Notes under the pieces: model-generated | What the model was told of the DNA's origin: nothing | What the model saw: only the letters and a program-made list of their open reading frames with translations | Database searches by the model: none | Program-made: the position numbers and the translations under genes | In this document: in pieces, positions 1 through 36,178 of the stretch | Layout of the letters: each line of letters opens with the position of its first letter | Numbering within the stretch: position 1 is the stretch's first letter | Assembly: GCA_002269645.1 (NCBI GenBank) | Contig: NIVC01003770.1 | Coordinates: forward strand, 1-64,000 | Origin: Macrostomum lignano | Taxonomy: Eukaryota | DNA: 64,000 nucleotides | Direction: 5' to 3'

Positions 1-197
1 ACTACGAGGGTAAATTTACCAGCCCTTGGATTGCACAGAAACAGCTATAACTACAGATATTTATGCTCGAACAAGAGTAAAGGGCTCTGCAAACTTCTGT
101 GGAATATCACTACAACACTTAGCCTAGTATCACAAGAGCAAGAAAAAATACTGATTTCCTAAATACATAAATTTGACCAACAGATGTCGTTCGTGTC

Positions 198-1423
198 TCA
201 TATCAGCCTCTCCTCGTTTGGCGGCCGGAGAATGTCCTGCATGCTTTGCTGTCCCGACTTGCCGCTGCCCAGCTCCCGATCGCTGGGCTTATAAACGCCT
301 GTGTCCTTTCGTCGGTCGCGTATCACTTTGAAAGCTAAGCCAGCTGCAGTTCCGGCTAGCAGAACAAGTAGCAAACCCACTACTAGGCCGACTACCAGAC
401 GACTGTCTGCGGCTGGAGCCTGAGTTCCAGCCTCCACAGGCTCCGTTGTCTGAGCAGTCTGTGGTATCGTTGTCAGAGGCGGAGTCGTCGTTTGCGAGTC
501 GTCGCTAGCGGAGTCGTCGCTGGCGGAGTCGTCGCTAGCGGAGTCGTTGCTGGCGGAGTCGAACAGTTGGCGCCGCTGTAACCGTCGGTACAGTTACAGG
601 AGAAAGTCTCCAACGAAGCGATGCTAGTGCAGAATCCGTGCCCTGAGCAGGGCTCCAGGCCGCTGCTGCTTGTGTTGCAGAAATCTCTAGCCTTTAAGCA
701 AAGGTCGCCCCCGTAGCCGGTAGCGGTGCAGTTGCAGCTGGAGTGGAGGTTCCACTGAAGCCGGGGCAAGCAGCTGCCCCCGTTTGCACAGATGCAGGGG
801 TCCTCATGGCAGCCAGCCAAAGCACCGGAGCCATTCAATAGCTGCACATTCGTCACCTCGGCAATGGCATTATCCGAGGACTCAGTGACCGTCGCATTGG
901 CAAGGCAACCTCTTAGTCCGTCGGTGCCATTAGTACCACCAAAGGTCATCACAGTCCAGTTGAATATCGCCGTTAATGCTGTCGTCGGATCTGCAAATAC
1001 ACGTAGCAGTTCAGCTCCATCCAAGCTGACAGTCACGTCGCTGGCATTGGCATCGAGTCTGATGCTGACAGAGTGCCAGTATCCGTCAGTAAGATTAACA
1101 GCAGCTTGGTTGCGACTGCCATTCGAAGGCCAATCAGCAGTCAGATGCTGGAAAGTGATGCCGAGGACCAGTTGCAGCATGCTGTTGGTTTCATTGTCCG
1201 TCGACGGTGCGTACAAGCCCCAGATGGACCAAGCCGGGTGTGACGCTCGAAACTCGAATGTTGCGACAGTTTCAATCGGGATCGCCGAAGCATTTTGGCG
1301 CGTCAGATTTGCAACGCCACTGACGTTAAATGTTGCGACATCGGCCGAAGCATTGGAAATTGGCAGTGTAACCAGAAACAGCACGCCGAAGCAGAAATAC
1401 AGAAAAAATCGTCGAAGAAACAT
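198..1423 (-). CDS. crb: Compact intronless Crumbs-family protein (signal peptide, LamG, 2 EGF, Thr/Pro stalk, TM, FERM-binding motif, ERLI); about 408 aa after restoring one base at ~496
   Basis: ORF 473..1450 gives a hydrophobic N-terminus (ATG at 1423), a LamG signature (DGYWHSV..VSLDG..FGG..GC) and two EGF modules. ORF 198..437 gives a TM plus tail GVYKPSDRE...PPNEERLI, matching the Crumbs GxYxPSxxE and ERLI motifs. Adding one G at 496 (tttgcg[g]agtc) joins the two frames through TTPQTTTPPLTTIPQTAQTTEPVEAGTQ. Confidence 0.88.
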
Positions 1424-2733
1424 GCTTTCTGCGTCTAACAATTCAACCAAAGCAAAAGAAGTCGTCAGAGCTATAGTTGCACGAAACAGTTGATTCGAAT
1501 CTATCGCTTCAATAGGCCGTAGTTCAGGTAAGCTTTATAATCGCTTTCACACTTGCTCGTTTACTCTCATGCTTAATTAGACGCAGGCTGAAGCATAATA
1601 ATAGCTGCAATAGCACGAAGTTCCACGAGTGTCGTATGTCAGCACGGGCACGATAGAGAGTAGTAGTACGTCTCTAGTCACGGAGGAAATGCGCCACACT
1701 GGTACGCTCGCCGTGGCCTTTCTCGCGAACAGCTAGCTGCTTTCCTTTGTATACACTTCTCTGTATACTCACTATAGCAGCCCTGGCCTTCTCTCCAGAC
1801 ACAGGGGTAGAACTGACTGAACGGATTTGGCTAACGAATCTTTCTTGCCAAAAGTTCTGTTGGTCATGCAGTACTCATGTCGTTTTTTCTTAATGCTTCG
1901 TTTTTTATTTTCACTCCTGCTTCGCAGAGAACACGGCCCACAGGGAAAGTTTTCTCTCGTATTAGCCCATGTAAAATCGTTTCTATATCGGGCTGACGGA
2001 CACGGTGGATTGGGCTGAGTTAGTTGAGCAGAGCCGGGAGGTAGGGCGGAGAAGCTTTATGGGTAGAGAAAGGGAGTTGCACTGGAAGGCTATTGGATGA
2101 AAGAACTGCAGCTTAGGGCGTGGAGATGCATGAGCTCATTCGCTTTCCTCCGCTCTCTCCTGCCCTACCGTCTCACCAGCTGAGCACTGTCTCTGTCGGA
2201 CTTAACTGCGCACGACAATAGGCCTATAATTTCGCGGGGGAGTGCTCGTTTCTCACCCTCAGGCCAGCGTGCATGGTCGCTTGGCGTGCATACATGAGCA
2301 TATACGAGCGTATACGGAATGAGGCGCTTTGCATTCAGTGGCAGACTGAACTTGAGTAAGCAAATGATAGAAGAGATAATTATTTTCAGTGAAAAGGATG
2401 ACAGTTTTCTGTTGCAACCACTGCCTATTATTTACTCCTTAATATCTGTATATTATGACATTAAGTAATTAAAGCTTTCAAGCAAGATAAGGAGTCAGAG
2501 GCAATCGCGAGGGACTGTCAGAACAGTTGTGCATAGACACGATAATGCAGACACGTTATTAGGAGGTGGGGCAGCTATGTACAAGAATGGGGCAGTGGGG
2601 CTTCACCGCTGCTTTAACCGTGCCTTAATTTAACAGCGCACATGTATAAACATTCTTGCTTGCCTAGATTGACTAAGGGACTGGAGAGTGGCATAATTTT
2701 AACCATTGTCAATTATAGAAGCTTGTCTAGCAG

Positions 2734-4792
2734 ATGTATCAATGTCGAATCCTTCTGAGGCAGCGCTCGCTACTTCAACGATCGCTATGCACAGCAAAGT
2801 CGGGCACCCCAAACGGTCGATTCGACTGCGCAGTGATCGGTGCCGGACACAACGGCCTGGTGGCTGCCGCCTACTTGGCTGGCGCTGGTAAGAAAGTCTG
2901 CGTACTTGAACGGCGCCATGTGATCGGTGGCGCTGCCGTAACTGAGGAGATCGTGCCCGGGTTCAAGTTCAGCCGCTGCTCCTACGTGCTGAGCCTGCTG
3001 CGCCCGAAAGTGATGGAAGACCTTCAGCTAGAACGGCATGGCTTGGTCGTGTACACTCGCGACCCCAGCTCCTATACGCCTCTACTGGAGCCCGGGTCGA
3101 AAACTGGAGCTCAATCACTTCTACTGGGTCGCGACCACGCGCGGACGCACAGGTCCATCGCCGCATTTTCGCCTCGCGACGCCGACCAGTTCGTCCGCTA
3201 CGAAGAGCAGATGGGCCGCCTGGCAGCCAGTCTGGAGCCGCTGCTCGATAACCCGCCGTTCAACTTGCACCACCTGCTGGCATCAAGCGGACTTCGTGCG
3301 AAAGCAAGGGAACTCGAACGGGCTAGACCGCTTTACCGGATGGCGTCTCAGCTCGGACCGCAGCTGCTGCAGCTCTACGAGCTGCTCACTGCGCCAACTT
3401 CTCGAATTCTGGATCGCTGGTTCGAGAGCGAGCCTTTGAAGGCCACCCTGGCCACGGACAGCGTCATCGGAGCAATGATTTCGCCGGACACGCCTGGCAG
3501 CGGCTACGTACTACTGCATCACGTGATGGGCGGAGTGAACAATATCCCAGGAGCATGGGGCTTTGTCCACGGCGGTATGGGATCTGTTAGCAAAGCTATT
3601 GCCGAAAGTGCTCAAGCAAGAGGTATGAAACTACAGGAACCAATTGCTATTAACGAGTAAACTTTGAAGCTCAATTTGATTTAAAACGCTTAAATCGTTT
3701 CTCCTCAGGTGCCAAGATATTCACCGATGCTCCGGTCTCTCATATCAAAGTAGTAAATGGCAAAACAGAAGGTGTTGTTCTTGCCGACGGCAGCGAAGTA
3801 GATGCGCCCGTGGTGTTGTCGAATGCCACGCCGAAGGTGACATTCGAAAACCTGCTGCCACCAGACTCTCTGCCCGAGGACGATTTTCTGGCCAGCGTAC
3901 GGCGAATCGACTACGCCTCGCCAGTGACGAAAATCAACGTGGCCGTTTCCCGACTGCCAAACTTTCTCGCCGATCCCAATCCGGTGTCGGGCGACTGCCC
4001 GGACCATTTTCACGGCACCATTCACCTCAACTCCGACAGCTGCGCCATGATTGATACGGCCTACCGGGCCTGTCAGCAGGGCGGCTACGCTGATAGGCCG
4101 GTCATCGAGATGACTGTGCCCTCGTCGCTTGACGATAGTCTAGCTCCAAAAGGTACGCGGAAGATTGAGCATTTCTATACTAATATACTGCAGGTCTGGC
4201 TGGTTGACTGTCTCCAGAACTTGTTCTAGAAGCGTCCCAGAGGACTGTGCAAGAGAAGTTAGGCTTATCTGAAACGCCTCCCAAATGATTCAACACTGCT
4301 CATAGTTGACTTTATGAACCATGGAAACCACGTTTTCAATTAGCTTTTAATGCGTCTTCTCTCTGTAGGGGGTTTACCGGATAATCCTCGTCCTAATTAC
4401 CAATAGGTGCACACGTGGTCCAGCTATTTACTCAGTACACACCAAAGCTGCTGCATGGCAAGCGGTGGACGCAGGAGGACAAGGACCGCTACACCAGGAC
4501 CGTGTTCAAATGCATCGACGACTACGCGCCCGGTTTCTCCGCCTCGGTTGTTGGCAGCGACGTGCTGACTCCGCAGGACCTAGAAGAGACATTCGGTCTC
4601 ACCGGAGGCAACATCTTCCACGGCGGGATGTCGCTTGACCAGCTTTACTTCATGCGGCCAACCCCCGAGTACTGCGACTATCGCAGTCCGATCGGCGGCC
4701 TCTACCTGTGCGGCAGCGGGGCTCACCCTGGTGGCGGCGTCATGGGTGCACCTGGACGGCTGTGCGCTTTGGAAGTGCTCAGAGACAGCTAA
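2734..4792 (+). CDS. PYROXD2: Pyridine nucleotide-disulfide oxidoreductase domain 2 (phytoene desaturase-like FAD oxidoreductase); exons 2734-3622, 3709-4152, 4407-4792; 572 aa
   Basis: FAD motif [49 protein letters not shown] and C-terminal [25 protein letters not shown]. Both GT-AG introns are phase 1 and join the three ORFs in frame. Confidence 0.93.
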
Positions 4793-5164
4793 ATGATGAT
4801 CACTATTGAAGCCATTCATTTTGAATTCAATAGTTTCCTCTATTATTGAACCTCTATTTCTATTGGAATGAATTTTTTCGGTAATTATAGCAATATTTAG
4901 AATTATTCTATTTTTCAATAAGCAGATGTTAGAATTCGAAATTTATTTAATAATACATTTTAATAATCACTATACGAACGTAGAAGCAGTCTCAAAAATC
5001 CTTGTCTGAAATCGGTAATATTTTTATAGCTGATCCTGTAGGGTCAATACCAAACTACATCATAAGAATCAGCTGTTCTTGTCTTCAAAATGAATCAGTG
5101 AATGAATGTACCTTATCAGCCTAAAAATAAATCATACAAAACAACAGGTCTGCAATGACGCAGA

Positions 5165-5653
5165 CTACAGTTCTTTCTTCTCAGCAGCGTCCTCGCTGTC
5201 AGGCTGCTTGGCGGCCTTCTTCGCCGCTTCGTCGGTGCCTTGAAGCGTCGGCAGCTCGTCGTACTCGCCCGGCTTGTGCGCCGCCTCGCAGGCGGAGTTG
5301 CACCGGGCGAACTCCTCTGCCAGCTCGTGCTCGCTGACGCACTCGCGCCGGCAAACCTGCAGCTTGCTGAGCCGCTTTGCGCGCATGATTTCTTGGAAAG
5401 CCTCCTCGGCTTCGGCGCGCAGCTTCGGATCCTCCGTGTTCATCAGCATCATGCGGTCGATCTCAGGGCCGGCCTTGGGGTCCTTTTTCATGAAGTCCAT
5501 GTTGACGTCATCGGCGTCCGGGTAGAAGGCCAGAGCTGGAAGCGACAGCTGCGTGAGCAGCACCAGCAGCACCGGGAGGGTTTCTCTTCTAAAAGCCGGC
5601 TGCATTTCCAAGACAGACGGGTATATCAAACTTTCAAATCGGGTAGCTCGCAT
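5165..5653 (-). CDS. Small secreted protein with twin CX3C motif, unknown function (start may be ATG 5605, 146 aa)
   Basis: 162-aa GC-rich ORF with signal-peptide-like segment LPVLLVLLTQLSLPALA, motif CRREC..CNSAC and acidic tail ending KKEL. Confidence 0.7.
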   Translation of the reverse strand: MRATRFESLIYPSVLEMQPAFRRETLPVLLVLLTQLSLPALAFYPDADDVNMDFMKKDPKAGPEIDRMMLMNTEDPKLRAEAEEAFQEIMRAKRLSKLQVCRRECVSEHELAEEFARCNSACEAAHKPGEYDELPTLQGTDEAAKKAAKQPDSEDAAEKKEL

Positions 5654-6239
5654 GTTGGACCGGTTTTCAGCATTTTTATACCGGCTTGCCAGCTGATCTC
5701 AGTGTCCAATTGCAACGCGACCCGTCATGCCACATCAACACAGAGCAGGTGCGCCGTTCGATAGGAGAACTTTGGGACATTTAGTTTTCCCAATTGCAGT
5801 CTGTTCAAACACGCTGGTTCTCTATTTGATTTCAGTTGCTTCGATTCTGTCACAATCCAGCGCATTGTTCAACCATAAAGGTAAACACACGCCGATTGTG
5901 TTTAAACAGTTCACTTCGTATTACTTGACATTGAGCGAGAGTTATTTATGCAAGCCACCCATAGTCCATAGGGATTTCAAGCTGCCAGATTTTAAGCAGA
6001 GCCACCATTGACTTAGAAGCCTTAGCGCTCGATAATATCAGCATTTTCCAAGTCAATTTTTTCGATTTTCTAACTCAGTATACTTGAAAACATCTGTTTC
6101 CAGGACTTTGATAAGCAATTCGGCGCTCACGATTTATACTAATAGCTTCCTCAAAATGTATGTTTAGTCTTCTACATAATGTGCAGCCAGTTCTTCATAT
6201 CATCTACAAAGCCGCTCCCCATTTCGGTTGGGCTGGATA

Positions 6240-6378
6240 GGCTTTTCATAGCGGCCATAGTCTATTGCCAGCCTTGCCGGACTGGAGGGGCTTTTCATAG
6301 CGGCCATAGTCTATGGCCAGCCTTGCCGGACTGGAGGGGCTTTTCATAGCGGCCATAGTCTAAGGCCAGCCTTGCCGG
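6240..6378. repeat. 49-bp tandem repeat x~2.8 containing palindrome GGCCATAG-T-CTATGGCC
   Basis: Units start at 6240, 6289 and 6338. Confidence 0.85.
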
Positions 6379-6494
6379 GCGTGGAGCTATTTATAGAACT
6401 CTATGTTCGGCAAGGAACGGAGTTTTTTATTGCTTCGGCGCGAAGAACAAAAAAACGACGCGGGCTAATAACTAACCATGGAAAAACTGCTCAC

Positions 6495-33131
<26,637 letters not shown>

Positions 33132-33348
33132 GGAGGAAAGGAGAGCGAGAAGGGGGGCGGCGCAACTCGCCCCGCGTGCGACCGACCGCTCGCGGCTGGG
33201 GTGGGGGCCGGCTGCGGAGGTTGGGGTGGGTGTGAATTGGTCGGGCGAAAGTTAAAGGGGGGTTTGGCTGGGCTGGGGTGGGAGAGTTGAGGTTATCTTG
33301 GCCTCAACTGCCCAGCCCATGGGGGCCTGGAAGGGTGCCGTGCCTCAG

Positions 33349-33610
33349 CCAATCAGAGCCGAGGGGGTGGAGTTGAGTGACGATCAAAAGCGCTACGGCC
33401 TTTCTTGCACTGTTTTGTTGTACCCTTCGCCTCCCCCAGACAGAGGCCACGCACGGATAGGGAGAGGGGAGGGAACAGAGGAAAGGAACAACAGTGCGCT
33501 TTTGCCCTATACGACAGCGAAGCCGGGGGGGGGGGCGATTCACCTCAAAGCTGCGCTGCACAATGAACGAGGGTCAGCCAACCGAGGGTGACTCTCCACC
33601 GATTGCCAAT
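33349..33610 (-). promoter_or_regulatory. Putative Cav1 promoter region with two CCAAT boxes
   Basis: cagCCAATcag at 33349-33353 and tgCCAATcac at 33606-33610 lie in GC-rich sequence 200-480 bp upstream of the ATG. The TSS is unknown. Confidence 0.3.
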
Positions 33611-34539
33611 CACGTTTTTTTTCTTGGCCGACGGCCCAGAATACTATCGCATTGCGCAAATTAATGGTGTAAGTTGTTGAATAGAATACATACGCTCGTA
33701 CACATGGTAGCAATAAAATTGTACATTGTGTGCATGGGAAGAGTCATATAGATTTTTTACTTCATGGGATCTTTTATGCTTGTTTGTAAACTTACTACAC
33801 TTAGTAAAAAATTGCGTACTTTCTGATTTTCAAGTTTGAAGAAGTATATTATGAGGCAGTATTGATGCTTCAGACTTGACTTACTATCAAATTTCTCACC
33901 CTAGCTCCCTTGCCTCATCACTCTATCTCAGTCTTGCCTTCAGAATCTTCCCCACAGCACAGCAACTTGAGTGCACTTTTAAAGGCGATAAAAGCGCCCG
34001 GCTGTATTGAGGATTAGGATGGGAAGTTATACTAACACACGCAGTGTGATCCGACTTAAGCGTTATCTAGGATGCCGGGGGCTTCGGTCGAGAGATCCTC
34101 ATTCTCTCTCCTTTCCTCCCCCGCGCTCCAGCATTTGTATTGCAGGGATTTGTTAGAGAAATCCTCAACGCTGTTGCTCCCGGGCGGCCTCTCCAGCTGA
34201 CAGAGAGGCCCAGGCCGCCAGCCCGTCACCCAGGCTGCACACATAATGGGATGCGATGCCTCCCCGCTTCTAGTTCAGCAGCTACCGCAGCAGTTCGGGC
34301 TGTAGTTTGTGGTTGGGAAAAGATTTCTGCAATTATCCCTTAGCCTGAGATTAGCGCCGCCCAGTGAGCTCTGACCGAACGCCTATTTAGCTGCCACCAG
34401 CTGTCGGTTTCTAGGGATAAATTTGACAGTTCCTACTCGAGTTTTAGAAGCGAAGAGGCATGCATAGTTATCGGAATTTATTTCCCTGCAGACAATCTAA
34501 AAATCTAAATTAGTTCGCTATATTATCCGGGAAATATGG

Positions 34540-36178
34540 AATCTCACTGACTGGGATCTCACTGACTGGGATCTCACTGACTGGAATCTCACTGACTGGG
34601 ATCTCACTGACTGGGGATCTGACTGACTGGGATCTCACTGACTGGGATCTGACTGACTGGGATCTCACTGACTGGGATCTGACTGACTGGGATCTCACTG
34701 ACTGGGATCTCACTGACTGGGATCTCACTGACTGGGATCTGACTGACTGGGATCTGACTGACTGGGATCTCACTGACTGGGATCTCACTGACTGGGATCT
34801 CACTGACTGGGATCTCACTGACTGGGATCTCACTGACTGGGATCTCACTGACTGGGATCTCACTGACTGGGATCTGACTGACTGGGATCTCACTGACTGG
34901 GATCTCACTGACTGGGATCTCACTGACTGGGATCTCACTGACTGGGATCTCACTGACTGGGATCTCACTGACTGGGATCTCACTGACTGGGATCTCACTG
35001 ACTGGGATCTCACTGACTGGGATCTCACTGACTGGGATCTCACTGACTGGGATCTCACTGACTGGGATCTCACTGACTGGGATCTCACTGTCGACTGGGA
35101 TCTCACTGACTGAGATCTCACTGACTGGGATCTCACTGACTGGGGATCTGACTGACTGGGATCTCACTGACTGGGATCTGACTGACTGGGATCTCACTGA
35201 CTGGGATCTCACTGACTGGGATCTCACTGACTGGGATCTGACTGACTGGGATCTGACTGACTGGGATCTCACTGACTGGGATCTCACTGACTGGGATCTC
35301 ACTGACTGGGATCTCACTGACTGGGATCTGACTGACTGGGATCTCACTGACTGGGATCTCACTGACTGGGATCTCACTGACTGGGATCTCACTGACTGGG
35401 ATCTCACTGACTGGGATCTCACTGACTGGGATCTCACTGACTGGGATCTCACTGACTGGGATCTCACTGACTGGGATCTCACTGACTGGGATCTCACTGA
35501 CTGGGATCTCACTGTCGACTGGGATCTCACTGACTGAGATCTCACTGACTGGGATCTCACTGACTGGGGATCTGACTGACTGGGATCTCACTGACTGGGA
35601 TCTGACTGACTGGGATCTCACTGACTGGGATCTCACTGACTGGGGATCTCACTGACTGGGATCTCACTGACTGGGGATCTCACTGACTGGGATCTGACTG
35701 ACTGGGATCTCACTGACTGGGATCTCACTGACTGGGGATCTCACTGACTGGGATCTCACTGACTGGGATCTCACTGACTGGGATCTCACTGACTGGGATC
35801 TCACTGACTGGGATCTCACTGACTGGGATCTCACTGACTGGGGATCTCACTGACTGGGATCTCACTGACTGGGGATCTCACTGACTGGGATCTGACTGAC
35901 TGGGATCTCACTGACTGGGGATCTCACTGACTGGGATCTGACTGACTGGGATCTCACTGACTGGGATCTCACTGACTGGGGATCTCACTGACTGGGATCT
36001 CACTGACTGGGATTTCACTGACTGGGATCTCACTGACTGGGGATCTCACTGACTGGGATCTGACTGACTGGGATCTGACTGACTGGGATTTCACTGACTG
36101 GGATCTCACTGACTGGGGATCTCACTGACTGAGATCTCACTGTCGACTGGGATATCACTGACTGAGATCTCACTCACT
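34540..36178. repeat. 15-bp minisatellite (ctcactgactgggat) with occasional 1-3 bp indels
   Basis: Direct inspection. Confidence 0.95.

Follow-up and report, generated by a model that had tools for sequence, protein, structure and literature searches.

The Cav1 gene Mlig000393 of Macrostomum lignano is very probably an ordinary four-domain channel gene, which carries three other genes within its intron 15 and which, in the contig studied here, is cut by the contig end; by the same token, the three-domain channel which this contig seems to encode is very probably an artefact. The region analysed (the window, in the following) is a stretch of 64,000 nucleotides, corresponding to positions 1 to 64,000 of the forward strand of contig NIVC01003770.1. 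In the proposed mechanism, intron 15, located at DKNQ/RKC in the III-IV linker, would have grown to 7.3 kb, hosting three independent small genes; RNA polymerase would transcribe through these genes, and the spliceosome would join exon 15 to exon 16, generating a channel of 1973 aa. The contig ends within this intron, about 0.8 kb short of exon 16, and Cav1 seems to stop after domain III for this reason. GenBank already contains the host model as well as the nested genes, and the arrangement is an annotated one.

The features detected in the window are reported in Table 1. An initial annotation of the same region had described a Cav1 gene ending at a donor site, DKNQ/GTGAGC, and had put forward three explanations: (a) that a single Cav1 intron contains all three genes, (b) that the channel is split, or has three domains as a result of polyadenylation within the intron, (c) that the sequence is rearranged or misassembled at this point. 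The exon end is as described, since the minus strand reads ...GAG TTG GAC AAG AAT CAG up to 6495, followed by GTGAGC at 6494-6489. Exon 15, which encodes the last part of the IIIS5-S6 pore region, the whole of IIIS6 and the beginning of the III-IV linker, is the final Cav1 exon on NIVC01003770.1. The read-through peptide with its stop codon and the AATAAA hexamer located 34 nt later were both found at the expected positions. Similarly, the reported absence of domain IV exons from 1-6494 was borne out by a tblastn search, in which just one chance match (E = 3.8) fell within this interval, while matches elsewhere in the window were restricted to the paralogous domains I-III; the query, the human Cav1.2 sequence from the III-IV linker to IQ, served as a lead alone.

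Table 1. Features of the Cav1 locus in the window, in order of position. Coordinates are those of the window.
Feature	Position	Strand	Evidence or remark
Cav1 intron 15, first 6,494 nt; contig terminates inside	1..6494	-	alignment to L004
Nested gene 3, single-pass membrane protein, EGF and laminin-G-like, same strand as Cav1	198..1423	-	
Nested gene 2, 572-aa FAD/NAD(P)-binding oxidoreductase, opposite strand, convergent with gene 1	2734..4792	+	
Nested gene 1, single exon, 162 aa, same strand as Cav1	5165..5653	-	gene call; three contigs encode the same product
Non-coding spacer 5' of nested gene 1	5654..6232	-	TATAAAA about 25 nt before annotated ATG
49-bp tandem repeat, 3.1 copies, 94% matches	6233..6386	.	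between Cav1 donor and nested gene 1
AATAAA hexamer, 34 nt past read-through stop	6426..6431	-	use unsupported by evidence
Read-through of donor: VSSFSMVSY, then TAG at 6467-6465	6465..6492	-	deposited partial model ends ahead of this stop, at 6483
GT donor of Cav1 intron 15, CAG/GTGAGC, phase 0	6493..6494	-	same donor in L004 at 28203
Cav1 exon 15, encodes LYMSIDS...CELDKNQ	6495..6692	-	aa 1209-1274 of PAA65287.1, 100% identity
Exons 1-15 of Cav1, encoding the N-terminus and domains I-III, minisatellite-rich introns between	6495..33131	-	maps to PAA65287.1 aa 1-1274

The position of the window relative to its contig was evaluated by comparison with the assembly. Window 1..15653 matches NIVC01003770.1 1..15653 with 100% identity (contig of 77.7 kb, assembly Mlig_3_7, GCA_002269645.1), so that the contig physically ends at window position 1. 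The 162-aa product of nested gene 1, used for an exact look-up, occurs on three contigs of GCA_002269645.1. The loci named L001 and L004 are located on NIVC01001668.1 (253 kb), while L003 corresponds to NIVC01005260.1. Over window 35886..1, NIVC01001668.1 aligns colinearly, with an identity of about 98%, and it continues beyond the edge of the window; within this region, window 8936..1 aligns to L004 25776..34701 with 99.25% identity. On L004, exon 16 starts at 35534, after the acceptor ttctttcttatgcag, encodes a peptide including ...AMK and ends with AAG/gttagt. Its first base lies 833 nt past L004 34701, the base aligned to window position 1. In NIVC01005260.1, exon 16 and two further domain IV exons are found downstream of the same three genes. 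Domain IV exons are therefore present just beyond the aligned edge, on sister contigs which both pass uninterrupted through the point where NIVC01003770.1 stops. The locus of Mlig000393, an L-type calcium channel gene, occurs in at least three redundant copies, of which NIVC01003770.1 carries one. The Mlig_3_7 assembly is described as fragmented and redundant, as it contains 180 Mb of non-repetitive sequence in redundant blocks (identity of at least 95%), and its annotation was RNA-seq-guided, by a pipeline combining StringTie, TACO and TBONE for the definition of boundaries (PMC5730564).

The complete gene is represented by PAA65287.1 (Mlig000393g1, 1973 aa), encoded on NIVC01001668.1, which maps to L004 as 29 exons, with all introns of the GT-AG type. 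Exon 15 ends at 28202; intron 15 covers 28203-35533 (7,331 nt, phase 0), and exon 16 and the remaining 13 exons, encoding domain IV, GPHH and IQ, run to L004 54122. Four Ion_trans stretches are detected by Pfam in PAA65287.1 (E = 4e-267), vs three in the partial model of the window, together with GPHH (PF16905, E = 5e-26) and Ca_chan_IQ (PF08763, E = 9e-30), both encoded by exons within L004 45962-50864. The glutamates of the EEEE selectivity filter are all present (TMEGWTD, LTGEDWN, TFEGWPG, ATGEAWQ). The window encodes aa 1-1274 of this protein with zero amino-acid changes and one 1-nt deletion at about 25297. The same exon 15 and exon 16 are also joined in UniProt models of other origin (A0A1I8JEW8, A0A1I8GVU8). 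Judging from the deposited gene models, splicing of exon 15 to exon 16 is presumably the main outcome; the missing tail of the window copy should also exist in the animal, even if this copy could, in principle, differ downstream.

A functional Cav alpha-1 subunit needs four domains plus the EF-hand/IQ tail. As in the L-type Cav1 channels, such as Drosophila Ca-alpha1D and vertebrate Cav1.2, the M. lignano protein contains four Ion_trans domains, GPHH, IQ and the pore glutamates, and no unusual feature distinguishes it from them; the window contig, in contrast, contains domains I-III only, because the contig ends. The assignment to Cav1, rather than to Cav2 or Cav3, follows the database matches: among the top ones, every named entry is described as L-type, as 'type D' or as 'muscle calcium channel alpha-1'. 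The best relatives, reached by using a 1196-aa composite query, are 57-63% identical, while a 164-aa domain III peptide, used as protein query, matched just short fragments of up to 287 aa and no M. lignano entry.

The three genes contained in intron 15 were located in both copies. In L004 they are found at 29044-29532 (+), 29905-31963 (-) and 33278-34504 (+), i.e. wholly within the intron, and are flanked on both sides by host exons (exon 15 to 28202, exon 16 from 35534). Explanation (a) is thus supported, as a 7,331-nt intron of the sister contig holds the same three genes. The number of the genes and their strands, two of them on that of Cav1, are as given in the initial annotation; their description as complete needs a correction for the third, which is interrupted in the window. 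Its product is 408 aa long in the sister copy, while in the window it corresponds to two ORFs, 473-1423 (316 aa) and 198-437 (79 aa), as a consequence of a 1-nt deletion near 497, within a Thr/Pro-rich 15-bp repeat. In nested gene 3, the EGF domain is detected with E = 2e-6, and Laminin_G_2 with E = 7e-4, below the curated cut-off. Nested gene 2 matches the Pfam families DAO, NAD_binding_8 (E = 1e-11) and Amino_oxidase, and its predicted product resembles phytoene desaturase or PYROXD2. For nested gene 1, a Pfam scan assigned no family; its product contains a signal-peptide-like stretch (MQPAFRRETLPVLLVLLTQLSLPALA).

The spacer separating nested gene 1 from the 49-bp repeat gave no match in Pfam, Rfam and tRNA searches, and presumably represents the promoter or 5' region of nested gene 1. 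At the opposite end, the stop codons of nested genes 1 (-) and 2 (+) are located just 373 nt apart (window 4792-5165). Two AATAAA hexamers, at 4942-4947 (-) and 5126-5131 (+), are the likely poly(A) signals of these convergent genes, whose 3' UTRs, given the positions of the hexamers, would therefore overlap.

The history of the intron was evaluated by comparison with paralogous genes and with other species. At the same phase-0 position, DKNQ/R, an intron of 626 nt is found in Mlig027667 (L005), one of 117 nt in Mlig000343 (L006) and one of about 66 nt in Daphnia pulex. The position is old. Since the introns located there in the paralogues and in Daphnia are short, it is the three-gene block that accounts for the large size of intron 15 in Mlig000393; most simply, this block would have been gained in the lineage of the Mlig000393 paralogue. 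No nested gene is listed in the annotation of the Cav1 gene of Opisthorchis felineus, which spans 106 kb. Genes nested within introns of host genes are a common arrangement in animals, and may bring transcriptional interference (PMC11694760, PMC3192792, PMC3786989). Mlig000393 conforms to this scheme, as whole independent genes, on either strand, are contained in one intron and the host model is spliced across them; it differs from typical cases in having three such genes, two of them on the host strand, in one modest intron of 7.3 kb. The biology which remains is itself modest: in a four-domain gene of the L-type, the intron located in the III-IV linker contains a block of three genes which the paralogues lack.

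Among the alternatives, the best surviving one, although still improbable, is that of a minor three-domain isoform, corresponding to explanation (b), in which the DKNQ donor would be left unspliced, translation would terminate at TAG 6465 and the transcript would be cleaved after AATAAA 6426-6431, or at a poly(A) site of a nested gene. The read-through stop and the hexamer are real and identical across the three contigs. AATAAA is, however, a common sequence: the window contains 67 copies and, besides the one discussed here, nine are located inside other Cav1 introns on the minus strand, i.e. on the strand of the gene, so that chance alone should place one hexamer no more than 100 nt away from a donor. 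The only truncated model deposited for this gene, PAA49886.1 (Mlig000393g4, 1047 aa, from the window's contig), is flagged 'partial' and ends with ...DKNQVSSF at 6483, without a stop codon; this end lies 12 nt into the intron, ahead of the TAG at 6465 and 52 nt short of the hexamer. Such a pattern fits a contig end, and points to a contig-end effect, rather than to an end defined by polyadenylation, as the origin of the 3' end of the model. The model located on the intact contig, on the other hand, has the full 1973 aa. A three-domain or split channel thus finds no support among the deposited models.

The 5' end of PAA49886.1 also differs from that of the complete protein. The model begins with MDQNAYL, just past the site, at about 25297 (minus strand), at which the IS2 exon lacks one nucleotide, and where the window reads ACCGCGAGTGC and the sister copy ACCGCCGAGTGC (GCC to GC); the downstream start is explained by this deletion, which shifts the Cav1 frame and is probably a consensus error.

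Some truncated two- or three-domain isoforms of vertebrate Cav alpha-1 act as dominant negatives. The M. lignano read-through product would likewise end just after IIIS6; unlike those isoforms, however, the truncated M. lignano model is probably a contig-end artefact. Two of the nested genes share the strand of Cav1, and nested genes have been reported to cause intron retention and cryptic polyadenylation in their hosts (PMC3192792). By analogy, it is plausible that same-strand nested genes, by placing poly(A) signals in the path of the host transcript, may cause some premature termination (cf. PMC3192792), a behaviour which, if true, would provide a tidy model of interference between host and nested genes.

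Truncated Cav1 models are also found, at other, unrelated places, in the paralogues, which further weakens the case for a three-domain isoform. The GenBank models of two Cav1 paralogues end early, at 1021 and 1057 aa (L005 10001-35337 and L006 10001-41023, respectively). Their interpretation as recurrent three-domain products was considered and rejected, since they end in IIIS3, in the region of the alternative exons, and not in the III-IV linker. In both cases the remaining exons are found just downstream, in L005 inside the interval assigned to another gene call. These short models are annotation splits, and truncated Cav1 models are a recurrent artefact in Mlig_3_7, whose annotation contains several of them, shortened for technical reasons.

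A related and decidedly improbable reading assigns a function to the intron itself. Owing to its two same-strand nested genes, intron 15 could be a regulated decision point, where part of the Cav1 pre-mRNAs would be terminated, either by the intronic AATAAA or by the poly(A) site of a nested gene, yielding a domain I-III protein; or mature transcripts of the nested genes could be derived from the host pre-mRNA through spliced-leader trans-splicing, a process which is widespread in M. lignano. If true, channel dosage would be coupled to the expression of the nested genes; such an effect would be paralogue-specific, because the inserted block is found in the Mlig000393 paralogue only.

It is very unlikely that the Mlig000393g4 copy is truly truncated or rearranged past nested gene 3, as would be the case for a redundant copy decaying within a neopolyploid/aneuploid genome. 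NIVC01003770.1 does end downstream of nested gene 3, and its copy of the gene is distinct from that of the sister contig, featuring a private 1.3-kb insertion with terminal inverted repeats (TIR) and 1-nt deletions in two coding regions. The detailed comparison with NIVC01001668.1, over the unique stretch of window 8136..1, revealed five substitutions and five single-base deletions. The latter, which are all the indels in this 8.1-kb stretch, are 1-nt losses on the window side, located within runs of G or C; the one which interrupts nested gene 3 is among them. Single-base deletions in G/C runs are the usual signature of long-read consensus error. Moreover, no amino-acid substitution is found in 1274 codons, and both other contigs continue straight through the point at which the Mlig000393g4 copy stops. 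The assembly is known to be fragmented and redundant (PMC5730564). The case suggests a general caution: when, in fragmented and redundant assemblies of polyploid genomes, a gene appears to stop at the edge of a window or contig, sister contigs should be compared first.

Finally, a misassembly fusing unrelated DNA at 6200-6500, near the 49-bp repeat, as assumed in explanation (c), has a practically negligible chance of being correct: tandem-repeat content changes sharply there, but the three contigs, although assembled separately, share 100% identity over 6180-6520 and remain colinear for kilobases in either direction, which, insofar as assemblies can tell, refutes a breakpoint at this site, and the real assembly break sits at window position 1, the contig end.

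The palindromic 49-bp repeat, reported to mark the boundary between repeat-rich and gene-dense DNA, is indeed present where tandem-repeat coverage shifts, from 1.3% of 1-6232 to 44% of 6233-36000. Three matches to the unit were found in the window, vs 0 expected, and no copy is located elsewhere in the window. Each unit carries a 17-nt palindrome, GGCCATAG-A-CTATGGCC; the palindrome of the middle unit is perfect, while those of the other units contain a single mismatch each. The repeat is 100% identical in the three contigs. Searches for Rfam families (E <= 1) and for tRNAs gave no match, and the single-strand fold is unremarkable (z = -0.76). For these reasons, and because no second site is found, a special role for the repeat was dropped, and it was treated as one more minisatellite. 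Within window 6233-36000, nearly every Cav1 intron contains a separate long minisatellite array, the periods ranging over 4-104 bp and the copy number reaching 234; the nested-gene block, unlike the other Cav1 introns, is almost free of them.

Other features of the gene were noted. The IIIS2-S3 segment is encoded by two similar exons, at 10876-10977 and about 7735-7839 (-), with a minisatellite array of 2 kb between them, and the pair resembles mutually exclusive exons. The first one is taken in GenBank models, while some UniProt models wrongly place both in tandem. In the I-II linker, a cassette exon at about 17110-17180 (-) is included in PAA49886.1 and not in PAA65287.1, a difference probably due to alternative splicing.

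The possibility that the window and its sister contig are one molecule, assembled twice, was rejected, as the 1.3-kb TIR element occurs in the window alone. The element, located at window 21160-22478 inside a Cav1 intron and missing from the sister copy (L004 14710-14712), has terminal inverted repeats of at least 20 bp (CGAGGGGTGATCAAAAAG...CTTTTTGATCACCCCTCG), flanked by TA on each side, and looks like a non-autonomous insertion of the Tc1/mariner type, polymorphic between the copies.
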